A stretch of DNA of 64,000 nt. Source: Vicugna vicugna. Its lineage: Eukaryota. Position 1 is the first letter of the stretch. The number at the start of each line of letters is the position of its first letter. Location: positions 372,001 through 436,000 of the forward strand of contig MU062019.1 in assembly GCA_013265495.1 (NCBI GenBank). Reading direction: 5' to 3'. A model generated the notes under the pieces. The model had not been told where the DNA came from. It made no database searches and saw only the letters and a list, made by a program, of their open reading frames with translations. Both the position numbers and the translations under genes were made by a program. Shown here piece by piece: positions 336-24,522 of the stretch.

Positions 336-1818
336 CTTCCATGTACGCCTGAGTTGGAGTCAGCTGATGCCGTGAGGAGCCGACACGTCACGGCCAGGGC
401 AGCTGCTCAGATGCCCCCGTCACCAGGCACTAGCGTGACGCCCGCTGGATGTGCTTCAGACCAAATTCTTGCTGACGCTGTAGGTAAAAGTGTACTGGTA
501 CCAACTCCAAACGGTAAGGCTGGGGCGGGGGAAAGGCCTTCCTCAGATGCCAGCAGGGTGTCCGTCCAAGAACCCAGCTCAATTCGGACACCATCTGCCC
601 AGAGACAGCATCAGATTAAGGACTCAGCCCCACCAGACTGTCCCCTCCCCACCCACTGCACCTCAGACACCAGTCGCAAGTCCAGGTTGGTGCCTTTGTT
701 CATAAGGAATTCCAGTCTGATTGGGAAAATGAAGCGTAGATGACTCTGTGTGTGGGGTGTGTGTGTGTAATATGTGTATATATACACATGCGTGTGTGTG
801 GGTGTGCCTAGTGTGCACACACACTAAGTATATACACGTGTGTGACACGCATGTAAGTATCCTTAGTGTGTGGCCCCCAGACCACGCTGAAGAGGCAAAG
901 ACCACATGCCTGCGCCGAACCCTGGCTCTGAGCCCTGGGGCTGCTCTCTCGTCTGTGTCTCCTTGTCTGCAAATTGAGGAAACCAGGGTTTTCTGAGGAT
1001 TGAGTGAGGTGATATTTGTAAGGCAGAATATGTTTGCTAAGTCACTGTGGACGTAAGGAGCTTCTTGGCTGTTTCTCGTTTGGCCCTCATTTACTGCTTC
1101 TCCCTGGTTGCGAGGTAACCAACACTTCCCGGTGTGAGATTTTTCCCTCACAAAGTCAAGTCTTGACTTGGCTTCGCTGTCATGGCTCTTTTCCTGTGTT
1201 AGTTCTCTTTTATGGTGAGTTTCTGAGTTGCTTCTCTGATAAACGTGGAACTCACTCCAAAGTGCCAAGCGACTGAGTGCTTGTTCTCGCAGCGTCCGTG
1301 GTGGCGACGTTCGGCTGTTCCTTGCGTATCCTGAGCTCCCAAAGCGGGCTGACGCTCTAGTGCCAGTGTCTGGCGTTTACAGTCCCGTCTTAGCCTTTCT
1401 GTGCACGTGTAACGATGTGTGTCTGTGCCTGTTTCTGTATCTCTGTTCAGCTACCCCACGGCCTCAAGAAATCTTCTTAGGTTTCCAGCCCTAAAGCCCA
1501 CGTTTGCAGAATACAGCTCTCATTAGCTTATTGGCTTTGATGCCCGGACCATTCCTTCTCAAATGGTCACTGCAAGGGACGTCGAGTGTTCTGGTGAAAC
1601 AGATGCAGTAGTGGTTGTGCTTTAAATTTTCTGTGTAATTCGTCTGTTTCTTGGAGATCACGTACATGGTTTTTAACAGTCCTCAGCCACTGGATTTCTT
1701 TCTTTTAGGTGCAAACATGAACGTTCTGTCATTTATGTGCCCCTCAAACCTCTCCTTGAAAACTTTGTTTTTCTTTAAGGAACGTCAAAGATGTTTTACT
1801 CCTCTGCTCCGTTTCCAG

Positions 1819-1963
1819 GCCCCTGACATTCATGGGGTCGCAGACGAAGAAGGTCCTGCTGGCTCCCCTGAAGCATCCCGCTCGCCCCTTCCGGGTGTCC
1901 AGCCACGACCGCAGCAGCCGGCGCGGGCTGATGGCAGGCAGCCTGGGCGAGCTCCTCAGCAAG
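1819..1963 (+). CDS. CIDEA: CIDEA coding exon 2 (start of CIDE-N domain)
   Basis: ttccag|G CCC CTG ACA TTC ATG ... CTC AGC AAG|gtagcg; 145 nt. Confidence 0.95.
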
Positions 1964-2915: not shown

Positions 2916-3062
2916 ACCCTGGACGCCCTGATGATCACCAGCAGACTGGTCACTCTGGTGCTGGAGGAAGACGGCACAGTGGTGGACACAGAGGAGTTCT
3001 TCCAGACGCTGGGGGACAACACGCACTTCATGGCCTTGGAGAAAGGACAGAAGTGGACGCCG
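2916..3062 (+). CDS. CIDEA: CIDEA coding exon 3 (CIDE-N domain)
   Basis: cctag|ACC CTG GAC ... ACG CCG|gtaagt; 147 nt; TLDALMITSRLVTLVLEEDGTVVDTEEFFQTLGDNTHFMALEKGQKWTP. Confidence 0.96.
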
Positions 3063-3396
3063 GTAAGTGCTGTCACCCGACAGCTCCTGGGCAGGCTTCT
3101 CACCTGCAGACGTGCGGTCCCCACCTCGGTGTCAACCGGCCAGCTTTCTAAACTTTTCCTTTGTGTTCACTTCATAACTAGACCCACTGTCCTCAAAGGG
3201 AGTCTTTTAAGCTTTTCTAGGAAACCTAGCATCTTTGTGAACTTGGGCTATATGATTTAAGGCCAGTAATTCTGAGGGACAGGCTTTGGCCAGTGAGTAA
3301 CTACAGATCCTTAGAACATGCGGTCATGACCTGGTGACCACTCACTGTGACCCCGAGAGGCGGCAAGCTAACATAGCTGGTGAAATTAGCAGGGGA

Positions 3397-3397
<1 letters not shown>

Positions 3398-3429
<32 letters not shown>
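3398..3429. repeat. (TG)16 microsatellite, duplication unit 1
   Basis: Read directly. Confidence 0.95.
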
Positions 3430-3434
<5 letters not shown>

Positions 3435-3556
3435 TTTAGAAAAGCAAGAGATAGAATAAAGGGTTTTACTTCTGACAAAACGATAGATTATGTATCTTGG
3501 GAAACACTCCCACCATAACACACCTAAAAATGTAAGCAAAACATTAAAACATCTTG

Positions 3557-3642
3557 TTTTTTTTTTAATGGAGAGACTGGGGATTGAACCCAGGACCTCA
3601 TACATGCTAAGCATGTGCTCTACCCCTGAGCTATTACCCTCC
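3557..3642 (-). mobile_element. tRNA-derived SINE (camelid-type)
   Basis: Minus strand reads GGAGGGTAATAGCTCAGGGGTAGAGCACATGCTTAGCATGTATGAGGTCCTGGGTTCAATCCCCAG, followed by an A-tail; Pol III A and B boxes present. Confidence 0.85.
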
Positions 3643-4208
3643 TCCCCTAAAACATGTTTTTATATGCCTCACTGGCCTTCAAAACCAGGAGATCCTCAGC
3701 GGCCAAGGTTTTTAAGGGAACCAGAATCCAGAGAGGAAAGCGAACGCTGAGGCGGGGGCTCCCCCGGCCCAGGGCCACAGGGCTCCAGCTCTGCCCTCAC
3801 AGACTCTCGTGGAGGAAGTGTCAGTGGAGGTTCCACACTTCATGGCCTTGGAGAAAGGACAGAAGTGGACGCCGGTAAGTGCTGTCACCCGACAGCTCCT
3901 GGGCAGGCTTCTCACCTGCAGACGTGCGGTCCCCTCCTCGGTGTCAACCGGCCAGCTTTCTAAACTTTTCCTTTGTGTTCACTTCATAACTAGACCCACT
4001 GTCCTCAAAGGGAGTCTTTTAAGCTTTTCTAGGAAACCTAGCATCTTTGTGAACTTGGGCTATATGATTTAAGGCCAGTAATTCTGAGGGACAGGCTTTG
4101 GCCAGTGAGTAACTACAGATCCTTAGAACATGCGGTCATGACCCGGTGACCACTCACTGTGACCCCGAGAGGCGGCAAGCTAACATAGCTGGTGAAATTA
4201 GCAGGGGA

Positions 4209-4209
<1 letters not shown>

Positions 4210-4243
<34 letters not shown>
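4210..4243. repeat. (TG)17 microsatellite followed by AATG, duplication unit 2
   Basis: Read directly. Confidence 0.95.
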
Positions 4244-4248
<5 letters not shown>

Positions 4249-4374
4249 AGTATTTAGAAAAGCAAGAGATAGAATAAAGGGTTTTACTTCTGACAAAACG
4301 ATAGATTATGTATCTTGGGAAACACTCCCACCATAACACACCTAAAAATGTAAGCAAAACATTAAAACATCTTG

Positions 4375-4460
4375 TTTTTTTTTTAATGGAGAGACTGGGG
4401 ATTGAACCCAGGACCTCATACATGCTAAGCATGTGCTCTACCCCTGAGCTATTACCCTCC
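4375..4460 (-). mobile_element. Same SINE, copied within the tandem duplication
   Basis: Matches 3557-3642. Confidence 0.85.
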
Positions 4461-4724
4461 TCCCCTAAAACATGTTTTTATATGCCTCACTGGCCTTCAA
4501 AACCAGGAGATCCTCAGCGGCCAAGGTTTTTAAGGGAACCAGAATCCAGAGAGGAAAGCGAACGCTGAGGCGGGGGCTCCCCTGGCCCAGGGCCACAGGG
4601 CTCCAGCTCTGCCCTCACAGACTCTCGTGGAGGAAGTGTCAGTGGAGGTTCCCTCGCTGGGTTCCCGGCACCCAGCCGGCCCTGCCCTCCAGCCGCAGGG
4701 ACCATGGCCTCCCCCCAGAACCTG

Positions 4725-5070
4725 GGGACGCGCTACTTTACATGGCAAAGGGGACTCGGCAGATGTGATTACAGGAGGGATCTCGACATGGGGTGATGGT
4801 CCTGGATTATCCGTGGGCCAGTGTCACCACAGCGTCCTGTAAGAGGGACATGGGAGGGTCAGCGTGGGGGCAGGAGGCGGATGAGGAGGAGTGATGAGGG
4901 GATGGGCCACAGGCCACGGCATGCAGGAGCAGGGCCGGCAGCCCCAGCAGGACAGCCCGTGGTGTCTCAGGGTGCCTGACCTGCAGAACCGAGCCGTCTG
5001 AGCATAAATCTGCGCTGTCTTTAAGGCACTCAGCTGGTGGCCACGTGTCTCAGCAGACCCAGGAAACTGG
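4725..5070 (+). mobile_element. MLT1-type (ERVL-MaLR) solo LTR remnant
   Basis: ttacatggcaaaggggactcggcagatgtgatta...cctggattatcc...gcataaatctgcgctgtctttaaggcact resembles the MLT1 consensus as I recall it. Confidence 0.6.
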
Positions 5071-6579
5071 TGGGGCTGGTATTCTGTTTGCTTTGTGAAT
5101 GAGACGCTCGTTTACTCCCTGGGGGAGACAGTTCCCGCATAACAGGTTGAAGCCCTCGCGTGGCAGGTGCGGGGCTGGGGCACAGGGTGACGGCAGGATG
5201 CTGGGGACGAGATGTGAGGGTCCCGGGGGCGTGAGGCCCCTCGGTCTGGGACAGCCTGGCTGACGTGAGTCTCACCCGGGGTCGGTCCTTCAGGGTGGGG
5301 ACGGGCTCCTCGCAGGGAGGGAAGGTGCTGCCCCCCGGGAGGGGTTCCTCTCAGCGAGGCCACTGTGGTTTGACCTGGACGAGGACTTCTGAGAAGCAGC
5401 CACCAGGGGGCTCCCTGCTTCCACGCAAACGCCTTAGAGAACAGATCCCTGGGGGGCAGGGGTGGGGTTTGGTGGGGATGATGGAAGCCACACCCCATTA
5501 GGTCTCCACCTTGGGGAGGTCATCTTGACGTTGACATAAGACCAAGACTTGAGGGGGAGGCTGGGGGAGCGACGTGAAAACTCAGCATCAGAGAGCTGGG
5601 CGGGATCCCAGATGGAGCCCCCGCACCCCAACTCTGTCGTCTTAACTTTTAACATTTTCTGAAGGATGGGCAGCCCCCTCCCCATCGCACATGGGAGTTG
5701 ATGGGCTGAAACCAGGGTCTCTGGTTGTGTGTCCACGGAGGGGGGTATCTGGCAGGGAGGGTTTGGGTGCTTTGAGGGGGATGTGCGGTTTAACTTCAAA
5801 TTTAGTAGATTTTTGCCAGTGAATTTAACGTTCAGCTACTCCCGACTCCTAAGGTTCACGATAGCTGTGCCTCTGTGTGAATCCTGGACCCTGCAGGCCT
5901 GCGTGCGCGGCAAACCCCACGGACGTGTGCCCAGCACATGTGTCCTGGGACAGCTTTCTCTGCCCTGTTTCTTCAGGGCTTTTGTGGGGAAGATTGTTTA
6001 TAAACCCAGGATTTACAGGGGTCTCTGCCCTCTCCCGATGTCTCGGGTAGACGGAGAGTGGGTCCCACAAGTGTCCCCAGGAAGTTGGCGTCCCTCCAGG
6101 GCAGGTCCTCCAGCGGAGGATGCAGGGCAGCTCCCACACTGGCCTTCGCTCCCGCCGAGGGGTCTGACCCGCCCGCCGGCAGAGTCCCTGTGCCGCGGGA
6201 CAGCGCTGACCACCGGTCTCCAGGCGGACGGTGTCACAGCTGCGGGCCCGTCCACGTCCGCCAGATGGCCCTGGGTGACCCTGGTGAGTGCGTCTCCACC
6301 ACAGGTCACTGGCACAACCGTCCACCGATCCCTGGACCCTGAAACCCAGGCCCAAGGCCAGGTCTCCTGCATCTCCTGCATGAGACAAGGCAGCTTAGGG
6401 GGTTGGCCCCAAGGCAGTCTGAGCACACTGGTCTGTGACATTCCTCAGATAATTAGCGGCTTAGTCATGAACTGATTTTAAGCTGACAGGAGAGTGGAGA
6501 CCAGCCTAAACCCAGAATCACAGGGTTCGCAGGTCACAGCTGGGTTGGTGCCTAAGCCTCCCTCCCTCCACGGCCCTAG

Positions 6580-6761
6580 GGTGGGAACTGTGTCCCAGCC
6601 CGCCAGCCGCCGAGGAGATCGGGGATAGTGAGGGTCACCTTGGACTTGTACAAGCTGAACCCCAGGGACGTCATCGGCTGCCTCAACGTGAAAGCCACCA
6701 TGTACGGGATGTACTCCGTGTCCTACGACATCCGGTGCATGGGGCTCAAGGCCCTGCTGAG
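6580..6761 (+). CDS. CIDEA: CIDEA coding exon 4
   Basis: ccctag|GGT GGG AAC ... CTG CTG AG|gtaacg; 182 nt; SGIVRVTLDLYKLNPRDVIGCLNVKATMYGMYSVSYDIRC. Not reported by the ORF track. Confidence 0.95.
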
Positions 6762-7454
6762 GTAACGGTCGTCGGGTCCTGGGGGGCCGGGAAGTGGGAG
6801 GCGGCTCCCCTGCACCCAGAGCCCGGCCCTCACGTTGTCCTAAAAGTTCTTATGCCACAGACTTATTCGGAAGACAGTCTTGAGTTCACAATTTGTTTTC
6901 CCCCAAGACCATAAAATACTAAATAGAAAGAAAAACTAGTAAGTAGAGAGTGAGGACCCGAGTTCGAGCCACGGTTTCCGTCTGGAACAGCAGAGGCCGC
7001 ATCAGCCCTGGGACTGAGACGCCACAACGGGGTCAAGCCGGGGTGTCGCACCCGCGCTCAGAGCCCCGGGTCGTGGGGTCACGACCGCAGGACTGCTAGG
7101 ACTCCTTCAGCCTGGGGCCCCTTTCAGGCTGGACTTGACCGATTTCGGCACCGAACCCCACATATCGACAAGGCTGCCAGAGTGAGCAGACAGACCCCCG
7201 GGCGTTCCAGTGACTCAGGGACAAACCTCGACTGGAGGAGGCCAGCGGAGGGTGGTCCCAGGCCCGGGGCAGCGGGAGCAGCTGGCAACAGAGTCCAGGC
7301 CCCACTCAACCCCGGGAACCAGCGCAGCACCTCAGCGAGCCCCCGGGGCCGCGGGTCCTGGGAGCCCAGCTTCCCGAACTCGGAAGTATGGGGACGTGGG
7401 CATGTGCTGGAGGTGGCGTGAGGACCCCCGACGACCCTCGCCCCTCTCTTGCAG

Positions 7455-7602
7455 GAGCCTGCTGCGGGTCCTGTCTCACGCCGCCCAGGTGACCGGCCAG
7501 TTTCTTGTCTATGCGGGCACATACATGCTCCAGGTGCTGGCCGACACGGAAGAGCAGGTGGTGGCTGGCTCGCGCTGTAGGCAGGGGGTCACGAGCGGAT
7601 AG
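7455..7602 (+). CDS. CIDEA: CIDEA last coding exon
   Basis: ttgcag|G AGC CTG CTG CGG ... GGA TAG; SLLRVLSHAAQVTGQFLVYAGTYMLQVL. Confidence 0.94.
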
Positions 7603-9436: not shown

Positions 9437-12400
9437 CCCCGCCCCTCCCCACCATGGGGCAGCACCTTCCCACACAGGAATGAGGTGGGCACGCCAACTC
9501 CTGGGGACGACGGGGCCGCCTCCCTTCCCGCCCGAGGCCTGGGAGGCTGTGGCTGTCCCCAGGAGGCTGGGCCCTGCGTGCTCACTGCTGTCCTTCCCAC
9601 TTGGGGCCCCGTGCCTCCTGCCCCAGCTGCAGTGTGATGGATAAATCGTGTGCAAAGACTTTGGATGCACTCCCTCTCCTTCCTGCCGCCCTCCTCTCTG
9701 GGGATGCAGGTTCCCTCTATGATGATCTTAGTTTCTACAAAGGCGCCGGACTTTGTCCCGGAGGTTCTCAGTCAGGTGGGCGGCAGGGATCCCGGCTCTA
9801 TCTGCGTGTGTGTCCTCAGCAGAGCACTTGCTGCACCCCCTCCCCTGTGGCGGCGAGGCCCACAGCTGGCTGGAGCATTTGACTCGTCACCCAGACTCAG
9901 ACAGAGCAGGCGGGGCTGGCCGCTGCTGCACAGAGATGGGAGGCGGCCAGGCACCCATCGCCCCGAGCTGCCGCGGTACGGCACCCGCGTCTCCTCCCTG
10001 TCCTCACACCACATTTCCAGCCTCCCCAGAACAGCACTTGGGGCCGGGCCGTGCATCCTCAGCTGTCCGGGTGTCTCCCACCTGCTGCGGGATTCCTTGG
10101 GCCTGTCGCTGCCAGCCAGGCCTCGTCGGGGACAGATGGCCACGTAAAAATAGTCGTGGGCCTCGAGGTGCCACCTCCCCAGCTGTTCTCTTGAGCAGGA
10201 GCCAGACGAGAGGGTGGAGATGGCGGCCTCGGCGAGGGCCCTGGGCAGAGGCTCCCGTCCAGCGAGGATGCATGGTGGGGGTGCGGGGGGCCTCACCGGC
10301 GAGAAAAGGCTCGTGGCCCCCCAGCTCTCCCTGGAATGAACACCAGACAAAACGGTTCTCCCTGTTGATCAGTTTCCAACCAGTCCTACCTGGGCGGGAA
10401 CAGGTCTGACGCACATGCATCTCAACAGCCCCACAGCCCACGGCCTGCCTCCAGCTCAGGGAGCCGGGTCCGGGCAGCGGGGGGTTACAGTTTCTGTACA
10501 CCCCGGAGATCTCCTGGCTGCACCTGGAGCCAGCAGTTACCCAGGGCACACCTGAGAACCAGGAGACGTGTTCTCACCACAATAAAATGAAGTTTAAACA
10601 GTTAAAGATGCTGGAGTCTCGGTGCGTGGCCCAGGGCGGTTTACCTGGCTTCCTGGCCTGGGAAGACGTGGAGGGCACCTGCCTCGGGTAGGGCGGTGGG
10701 TAACCGCAGTGGACCCGCTCACGCCTCCGGGAGTGCATGCGTGAGCCACGTGGTGGACGTCTGGGAGCCGCTCACGGGGTCATTAGCAGGAAAGCAGGAT
10801 GAGCTGTGGGGATGGGCGGGAGAGATGCTTTCTGAATCCCGGGCCAGCTGGGGACTGAGGGTGTGGCCGCCGCAGCATTCCCGGGACAGCTGAGGCAGCT
10901 GCGCGGTGTGCTCGCCTGAACGGCATTTGATCTCCGAACGGCCAGGGTTTCCTGCGGAGAAACAGTAAGAATCTGCACCTACCGCATCCCAGGTGCCCTC
11001 AGAGCAAGCCTGTCAGCTGAGACGGCGCGGCCCTCCTCAGAGCCTCAGAGGAGGCAGGGCGGCTGGACGCCTCCCCTCCCGCCCTGCACGTCCCCGCCCT
11101 GCACAGAGCAGCCAGGCCGCAGACCAGATGGATACCCTGAGCTCAGCGGGACCAGCCGGAGCCACTAGGAAAGGACTCGGGCAAATACCTGGCTGATCAT
11201 AATCAGTTGTGAGCTCTTCTCGTTTAAAAGCATCGCCTGAATTTATATTTAATTCTGAGCAAACTCTGGTGGAAGCCTTTTTGTTGAGGGAGGCATTATT
11301 AAATTTTAAATTAAACATTCTGGGTCCTCCTTTCAGAAGAGGAAAGTCCTTGGATGCTGCGAACTTGCCCTTTTCTATTTTTTTCTTTCACAGTCACTTA
11401 CTAAGTGCATTTGTGTGTGAATGCACCTGCTGAGGGCTGTGGGCAACACGCAGGTGGTCGGGTCTCCAAGCGGGGGAGTTTACAGTCTAGCCCAGGAGGC
11501 AAGCGTCCTCAATGCAGCGCACTGGACGAGGGCCTGGTGATGCGGTTGAGACAGACGGGGGTGTCAGGGGGCAGATGGAAGTTCAGCTCTGACACGCCGC
11601 TGTGACGTCCAGCCAGAATCTGGGACCAGAAAAAGAGCACATCAGATAACCCCAGCTGCAGGTGGGGGTAGCACAGATCAACTTAATTTAATCCAAGCCA
11701 CAGGCTTAAGCAGCAAACAAACCCTGAACATTCCCATCAGAGCTTTTAGTTGCAGAAGCAGAGCTGTAAATGCCTTTCCCATCAGCTTCTGCTCGCACAC
11801 CAGCCGGGGGCGGTAAGGAGGGCTGGAAAAAGCAGACCAGGTCCGAAGGCTCTAGAGACGCGCAGGGGAGGGGCAGGCAGGCTCCGAGTGCTGGGGGAGG
11901 TGAGGAGGTGGCCTGAGGGTCTCTTGCCGGAGCGGGGGTGGGGGAGTCCGTGAGATGGACCGAGCTAGGCCGGGGTCTGAGGTCCGAGCTGTCTTCCCTG
12001 TGCTCGGAGCTCTGCCTGCCCCCTCTGTGTTGTCTTCCCTTTCCCCTCCTGTCCACTAAAAGATGTAACTGTTTCTTCTGTCAACGAGGTCAACACTTGA
12101 TTTTAAATAAAAGGCAGCTGAGTATGTATTTCTCCATCATACACACACACACAAATCTACCTTCTAAATCACATAACCACTTAGATCAGTTTCTCCTCTG
12201 CTTAGCGTAACCTTAATTTTTCATAGCCCAGTGGTCTCAACCAAGCGAGCAAGGCTGTCTTCTAGCACCCGGGACGGAGAGGGGCGCCTATGGGGTCCCA
12301 GCCAAACCCCACAGGAGTTTATGGGGTGTGCAGTGCCTGCTGTGCCAGACCCCTTGGGAAGGGACTCTTGACAGACCCACACAACCTGCCCGGTGGCCTG

Positions 12401-23421: not shown

Positions 23422-24522
<1,101 letters not shown>

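Follow-up and report, generated by a model that had tools for sequence, protein, structure and literature searches.

Kondrashov & Koonin in 2001 and Letunic et al. in 2002 are said to have described the birth of alternative exons by tandem exon duplication. In the classical form of this process a whole exon is copied together with both of its splice sites. New intronic donors, on the other hand, often activate cryptic acceptors that lie upstream of them, as in the case of ATM c.1899-123A>G, where one new donor is used with three different cryptic acceptors (PMC8268271). It must be noted that duplications can also be false: older assemblies often contain heterotype false duplications (PMC9516828), and a gap between the copies is a hallmark of those false duplications that lie on the same scaffold (Ko et al. 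2022, PMC9516828).

The locus analysed here can be compared with each of these systems. In the window, by which we mean the whole 64-kb stretch of DNA under study, a stretch of ~812 nt at the border of exon 3 and intron 3 of CIDEA is present twice, in head-to-tail orientation. As in tandem exon duplication, an intragenic tandem duplication supplies the material and the splice signals for an extra coding segment, and the reading frame of this segment is kept without a stop codon. Unlike in the classical process, the copy takes in no more of the exon than its 3' end and the donor, and the candidate acceptor would come from unrelated sequence of the intron. The likeness to ATM c.1899-123A>G consists in a strong deep-intronic donor that lies downstream of latent acceptors, with several AGs to choose from and an outcome set by exon definition. 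The ATM donor arose, however, by point mutation, whereas the CIDEA donor came with an 812-nt copy that includes 39 nt of true exon, and the ATM product is truncating, whereas the candidate CIDEA product would be in frame. With heterotype false duplications (PMC9516828) the locus shares near-identical adjacent copies, a divergence of the allelic level (0.38% single-nucleotide differences plus a microsatellite indel) and the absence of the second copy from the independent assembly of a close relative; it differs from them in the lack of a gap between its copies and in the small size of the block (0.8 kb). Taken together, the duplicated segment appears to contain a structurally valid but unproven pseudo-exon, which would represent a further case of kinds already described, not a novel one.

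Structure of the duplication

The gene is CIDEA, which codes for a lipid-droplet protein of the CIDE family. Its exons 2-5 (Table 1) match the alpaca CIDEA models at 98-100%. The CIDE-N domain (Pfam PF02017) corresponds to residues 35-109 of the 219-aa alpaca protein (E = 6e-30), exon 3 ends at residue 110, and the structure of the human CIDEA CIDE-N domain (2eel) matches the protein over residues 32-112 (E = 4e-40). Exon 3 ends and exon 4 begins on a complete codon, thus intron 3 is in phase 0. Our search of the literature on CIDEA in camels returned nothing relevant.

Table 1. Positions of the CIDEA exons, of the duplication and of the predicted splice signals in the window
Feature	Position	Strand	Description
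CIDEA exon 2	1780-1963	+	Long form from 1780, short form (RPLTFMG...) from 1819; donor GT at 1964; located by tblastn with alpaca and Bactrian camel models
CIDEA exon 3	2916-3062	+	49 aa (TLDAL...KGQKWTP), C-terminal half of CIDE-N; donor CCG/GTAAGT at 3063
Duplication unit 1	3024-3834 (811 nt)	+	3'-terminal 39 nt of exon 3, its donor, then ~770 nt of intron 3 with (TG)16 and a tRNA-Ala-like SINE
Latent acceptor ctctgccctcacAG	3789-3802	+	AG at 3801-3802
Candidate in-frame pseudo-exon	3803-3874	+	72 nt, 24 aa, phase 0/0, stop-free
Junction base	3835	+	Single extra A between the units
Duplication unit 2	3836-4652 (817 nt)	+	Runs seamlessly on into the unique part of intron 3
Duplicated exon-3 donor GTAAGT	3875-3880	+	Preceded by CCG as in exon 3; GT at 3875-3876
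Twin of the latent acceptor in unit 2	4607-4620	+	AG at 4619-4620; without a strong donor behind it
Homologue of the Camelus alternative exon	6051-6283	+	Frame-shifted here and in the alpaca reference; strong donor at 6284 kept
CIDEA exon 4	6580-6761	+	Begins on a full codon; donor GT at 6762-6763
CIDEA exon 5, coding part	7455-7602	+	Holds the stop codon

Alignment of the two units revealed three mismatches in 792 aligned sites (3123 A vs. 3935 T, 3332 T vs. 4144 C and 3765 C vs. 4583 T) and a net indel of 6 nt at the (TG)n tract. This degree of likeness is far above chance, and as far as the sequence goes the tandem duplication is real. The units are joined without any Ns, the letters around the joint being GGTTCC-A-CACTTC. 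The A at the junction is neither of the true neighbours of the unit, which are G on the upstream and C on the downstream side. It is either a non-templated base or, if the unit is taken to be 3022-3833, with microhomology of 1 nt, the result of a CpG-to-CpA change. The latter parse, in which blunt joining at this single nucleotide is followed by the CpG-to-CpA change, is compatible with a genuine duplication and with an artefact alike.

Both units contain, on the minus strand, a SINE head scored as full-length tRNA-Ala(AGC) (3569-3641 and 4387-4459; Rfam 46 bits, in agreement with ARAGORN), and Rfam and ARAGORN detected nothing beyond these two elements at the duplication. The SINE is probably old, because the unit can be aligned end to end in other camelids. 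RNA folding of the junction did not yield a structure more stable than those of shuffled sequence (z = -0.24).

Comparison with other camelid genomes

We compared the window with the CIDEA loci of the alpaca (reference assembly GCA_048564905.1), Camelus ferus, C. dromedarius and C. bactrianus. The unit occurs only once in each of them, and the junction sequence was found in none of the four. A blastn alignment of the window with the alpaca reference (98.6-98.7% identity over 9.1 kb) consisted of two blocks that overlap on alpaca positions 11073-11886, in the way typical of a tandem duplication in the window. Because the four other camelid assemblies carry the unit once, the duplication is private to the genome or the assembly from which the window derives, a South American camelid genome with ~1% divergence from the alpaca reference. 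As the Camelus genomes are single-copy, the duplication is not a trait of the hump-bearing camels, and at most a single lineage, individual or assembly of South American camelids would have it. The original prediction had interpreted the duplication as exon birth in a lineage with specialised fat storage. The anatomy that it described stood up to our analysis, whereas the part concerning lineage and fat storage is not supported in view of the single-copy state of the alpaca reference and the three Camelus genomes.

The units differ by 0.76-0.88% from the alpaca sequence and by ~4.1% from Camelus, as compared with the 0.38% between the copies. When the differences were polarised with outgroups, each copy turned out to have derived changes of its own: a small deletion and the T at 3332 in copy 1, two substitutions, one of them a CpG transition, in copy 2. 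Five further substitutions relative to alpaca are common to both copies. Because each copy has its own derived changes and CpG transitions prevail among the differences, these look like biological mutations, not like sequencing errors. On a rough clock that uses very small counts, a real duplication would be about half as old as the divergence from the alpaca haplotype, perhaps 1-2 My.

Exon 4 of the window is identical to that of the alpaca models and has the alpaca-type residues V, I, G and M. In exon 5, a codon in the segment 7540-7545 specifies D (...QVLADTEE...), as in Camelus, where both alpaca annotation releases have N (...QVLANTEE...). This D/N difference is a useful marker that sets the window, which comes from a South American camelid genome, apart from the annotated alpaca assemblies.

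Genuine duplication or assembly artefact

It is possible that the two units represent two alleles of one heterozygous locus, which were set in tandem by a scaffolder or a gap closer; the animal would then be single-copy and would have no pseudo-exon. We give this explanation close to an even chance, and we regard genuine duplication and stacked alleles as about equally balanced. Three single-nucleotide differences in 792 sites and a difference in microsatellite length are what one would see between alleles, and the divergence of the copies is about the level of heterozygosity in alpaca. The single-copy state of the alpaca and of all three Camelus assemblies points in the same direction. The extra base at the junction resembles a filled 1-base gap placeholder. 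Moreover, the N runs nearest to the duplication, which are ~20 kb away from it and separated from each other by 9 bases (23790-24010 and 24020-24481), have irregular lengths (221 and 462) that, if these are true gaps, would suit a short-read scaffolded assembly.

Other observations are difficult to reconcile with stacked alleles. There is no gap between the copies, in contrast to what is typical of false duplications on the same scaffold (PMC9516828). We found no other long near-identical direct repeat within the 64-kb window, nor any duplicated sequence flanking the N runs between 23790 and 24481. A simple fill by read extension fails to account for the A at the junction, because this base matches neither of the true neighbours. 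If the contig was built by a graph or long-read assembler, reads containing the junction would have been required.

Splice signals of the candidate exon

The duplication brings a copy of the exon 3 donor downstream of the latent acceptor located near the end of unit 1 (Table 1). The acceptor, the donor and the 72-nt segment enclosed by them had been predicted earlier, and we could confirm both their coordinates and their letters; the translation and the exon boundaries also agree with phase 0 at both ends and with the lack of stop codons. The segment translates into TLVEEVSVEVPHFMALEKGQKWTP (24 codons), whose last 13 residues repeat HFMALEKGQKWTP of exon 3. If spliced in, the insert would thus follow straight after CIDE-N and double the last 13 residues of the domain, just as the prediction had it. 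For the twin acceptor in unit 2, which was said to have no comparable donor behind it, we found within 250 nt only a weak GT at 4839 (score 1.6 vs. 6.5). An in-frame and stop-free state is not remarkable by itself: we estimate its chance at ~0.2, because it takes a one-in-three match of length and 11 intron-derived codons without a stop.

The splice sites were scored with a crude position-weight model based on consensus frequencies, which is suitable for ranking only. In this model the duplicated donor, being identical to the working donor of exon 3, ties as the strongest among 208 intronic GTs, and the acceptor ending at 3802 (score 4.0) ranks fifth among 264 intronic AGs. The real acceptors of exons 3, 4 and 5 score -1.0, 2.3 and 8.4, respectively. 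No other AG-GT pair of the intron joins an acceptor from the top 5 to a donor from the top 2, as the pair delimiting the candidate exon does. By the measure of this crude model, the candidate pseudo-exon would be no worse defined than exon 3 itself. The latent acceptor is kept in five of five camelid assemblies (the window, alpaca and the three Camelus species), and must therefore be an old latent site. The intron-derived half of the candidate exon contains the purine-rich stretch GGAGGAAG; stretches of this kind are known as splicing enhancers.

The surroundings of the acceptor are less favourable. Its pyrimidine tract is short and rich in C. It is preceded by three AGs ending at 3772, 3780 and 3788, that is 30, 22 and 14 nt before 3802, with poor scores of -2.7, -2.0 and -7.4. 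Reading of the sequence revealed no branch-point A with U at -2 within 40 nt of the acceptor at 3802; the best motif resembling a branch point, and the only one to have U at -2, is cgcTGAg (A at 3750), which precedes all four AGs. Splicing to the AG at 3772 would produce a variant of 102 nt, likewise in frame, whereas 3780 and 3788 would lead to frame-shifting exons of 94 and 86 nt. Since deep-intronic donors that arise anew are known to activate pseudo-exons (ATM c.1899-123A>G, PMC8268271), some inclusion of the pseudo-exon is plausible but unproven.

Search for transcripts and proteins

Full-length CIDEA proteins were gathered by a search with exon 3, by homologue search and from cluster listings. 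None of the 31 camelid CIDEA models contained the insert or a doubled EKGQKW motif. All models that could be traced to an assembly stem from assemblies without the duplication, thus their lack of the insert says little. When the 118-codon stop-free stretch spanning the junction was compared with 5.8 billion proteins, the only match was an unrelated fragment with 59% identity; ordinary single-copy camelid ORFs were equally unmatched, so this protein collection does not cover the locus. A comparison of the junction with metagenome contigs was uninformative, with no match either for the junction or for a single-copy control. The collections searched thus held neither genomic nor RNA fragments of this camelid locus. 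No transcript or gene model shows the exon, and exon birth would be a possibility.

Discussion

The explanation that we develop here, although we put it somewhat below even, is that the duplication is real and young, and that its extra donor is mostly an unused intronic decoy. Replication or repair would have left behind, with a clean junction, a head-to-tail duplication of ~812 nt spanning the border of exon 3 and intron 3. As a result, an identical second donor of exon 3, with 39 nt of exon in front of it, would sit at a depth of 812 nt in intron 3, 72 nt downstream of the old latent acceptor carried by all camelids. The normal splice from exon 3 to exon 4 would stay dominant, and the 72-nt pseudo-exon, or its 102-nt in-frame variant via 3772, would be at most a minor isoform. 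That the donor would serve as a decoy is to be expected because of the competing AGs at -14, -22 and -30, the short C-rich tract and the lack of a branch-point A with U at -2 within 40 nt. What the sequences show is the duplication with its limits, its lack in four other camelid genomes, the frame and the place relative to CIDE-N; that it is DNA of the animal, and how it would be spliced, we infer.

If the duplication is real and exon definition is efficient, the 72-nt segment could be included in a substantial share of the transcripts, adding 24 residues between CIDE-N and the C-terminal region, which would amount to true exon birth. Several features argue for this: the donor is a copy of a working one and is still preceded by 39 nt of its native exon, the score of the acceptor exceeds those of exons 3 and 4 in the crude model and the acceptor belongs to the only top-5/top-2 pair, GGAGGAAG lies in the intron-derived half, and an in-frame, stop-free exon would evade nonsense-mediated decay. 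There is also a precedent for pseudo-exon activation driven by a donor (PMC8268271), and since new donors can act in the way seen in ATM, inclusion could be substantial. A 69-aa exon predicted in Camelus at the same position of the protein suggests that the linker tolerates inserts. We nevertheless consider efficient inclusion unlikely. No transcript shows the segment, and neither does any of the 31 camelid models (those traced being from assemblies without the duplication), three AGs precede the acceptor at short distance and no branch point is evident, and the support by splice scores comes from a consensus-frequency model that serves for ranking only. The insert would repeat the last strand of CIDE-N and may disturb folding, and the whole explanation depends on the duplication being real. 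The more specific version, namely that a genuine duplication of ~1-2 My in a llama/guanaco-type lineage gave CIDEA a new constitutive or tissue-specific in-frame exon from a recruited acceptor and a copied donor, with a 24-aa linker insert repeating the last CIDE-N strand, is more improbable still.

Splicing usually favours the first AG that follows a branch point, and in the present case the best branch-point-like motif precedes all four candidates. The extra donor of a real duplication could pair with the AG at 3788 or 3780, the resulting frame-shifting pseudo-exons of 86 and 94 nt being degraded, so that CIDEA output would fall modestly and no new protein would be made, but this is very unlikely: four AGs within 30 nt (3772, 3780, 3788 and 3802) and the ATM donor with its three cryptic acceptors (PMC8268271) speak for it, whereas the upstream AGs score low (-2.7, -2.0 and -7.4 vs. 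4.0), and the 3772 variant, at 102 nt, is in frame.

To return to the young duplication with a decoy donor, its significance would depend on the reality of the duplication and on the use of the donor. If real and spliced in, the segment would offer a clean natural case, open to dating, in which the partial duplication of an exon and its intron gave rise to a new exon, with the ancestral single-copy state (alpaca and camels) and the derived state both at hand for comparison, and it would alter the linker in a protein that controls lipid-droplet fusion. As it stands, the case is mainly a warning: the duplication is known from one assembly and is not a fat-storage trait of camels, and a check of the reads should precede any biological interpretation or gene model.

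Intron 3 of CIDEA contains a further predicted coding segment in Camelus. RefSeq models of C. dromedarius and C. bactrianus (XP_074208455.1, XP_031295088.1 and others) have an extra in-frame exon of 69 aa between exons 3 and 4, which we located at ~11951-12204 of the C. ferus locus and at ~11930-12183 of the C. bactrianus locus. In the homologous segment of the window and of alpaca an indel shifts the frame, which then runs into a stop codon, and the exon would thus be a Camelus-specific alternative exon. It is like our candidate in being a predicted in-frame insert at the same point of the protein, and differs from it in having another sequence (homologous to 6051-6283) and no origin by duplication.

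Exon 2 also shows variation among the gene models. The models of alpaca and of the three Camelus species use an upstream acceptor, which extends the exon by 39 nt (1780-1818) and places 13 further residues, RNVKDVLLLCSVS, ahead of RPLTFMG. This extension is lacking from the non-camelid CIDEA proteins that were compared in full. In the position-weight model the upstream acceptor scores 3.7, as compared with 8.6 for the usual one.
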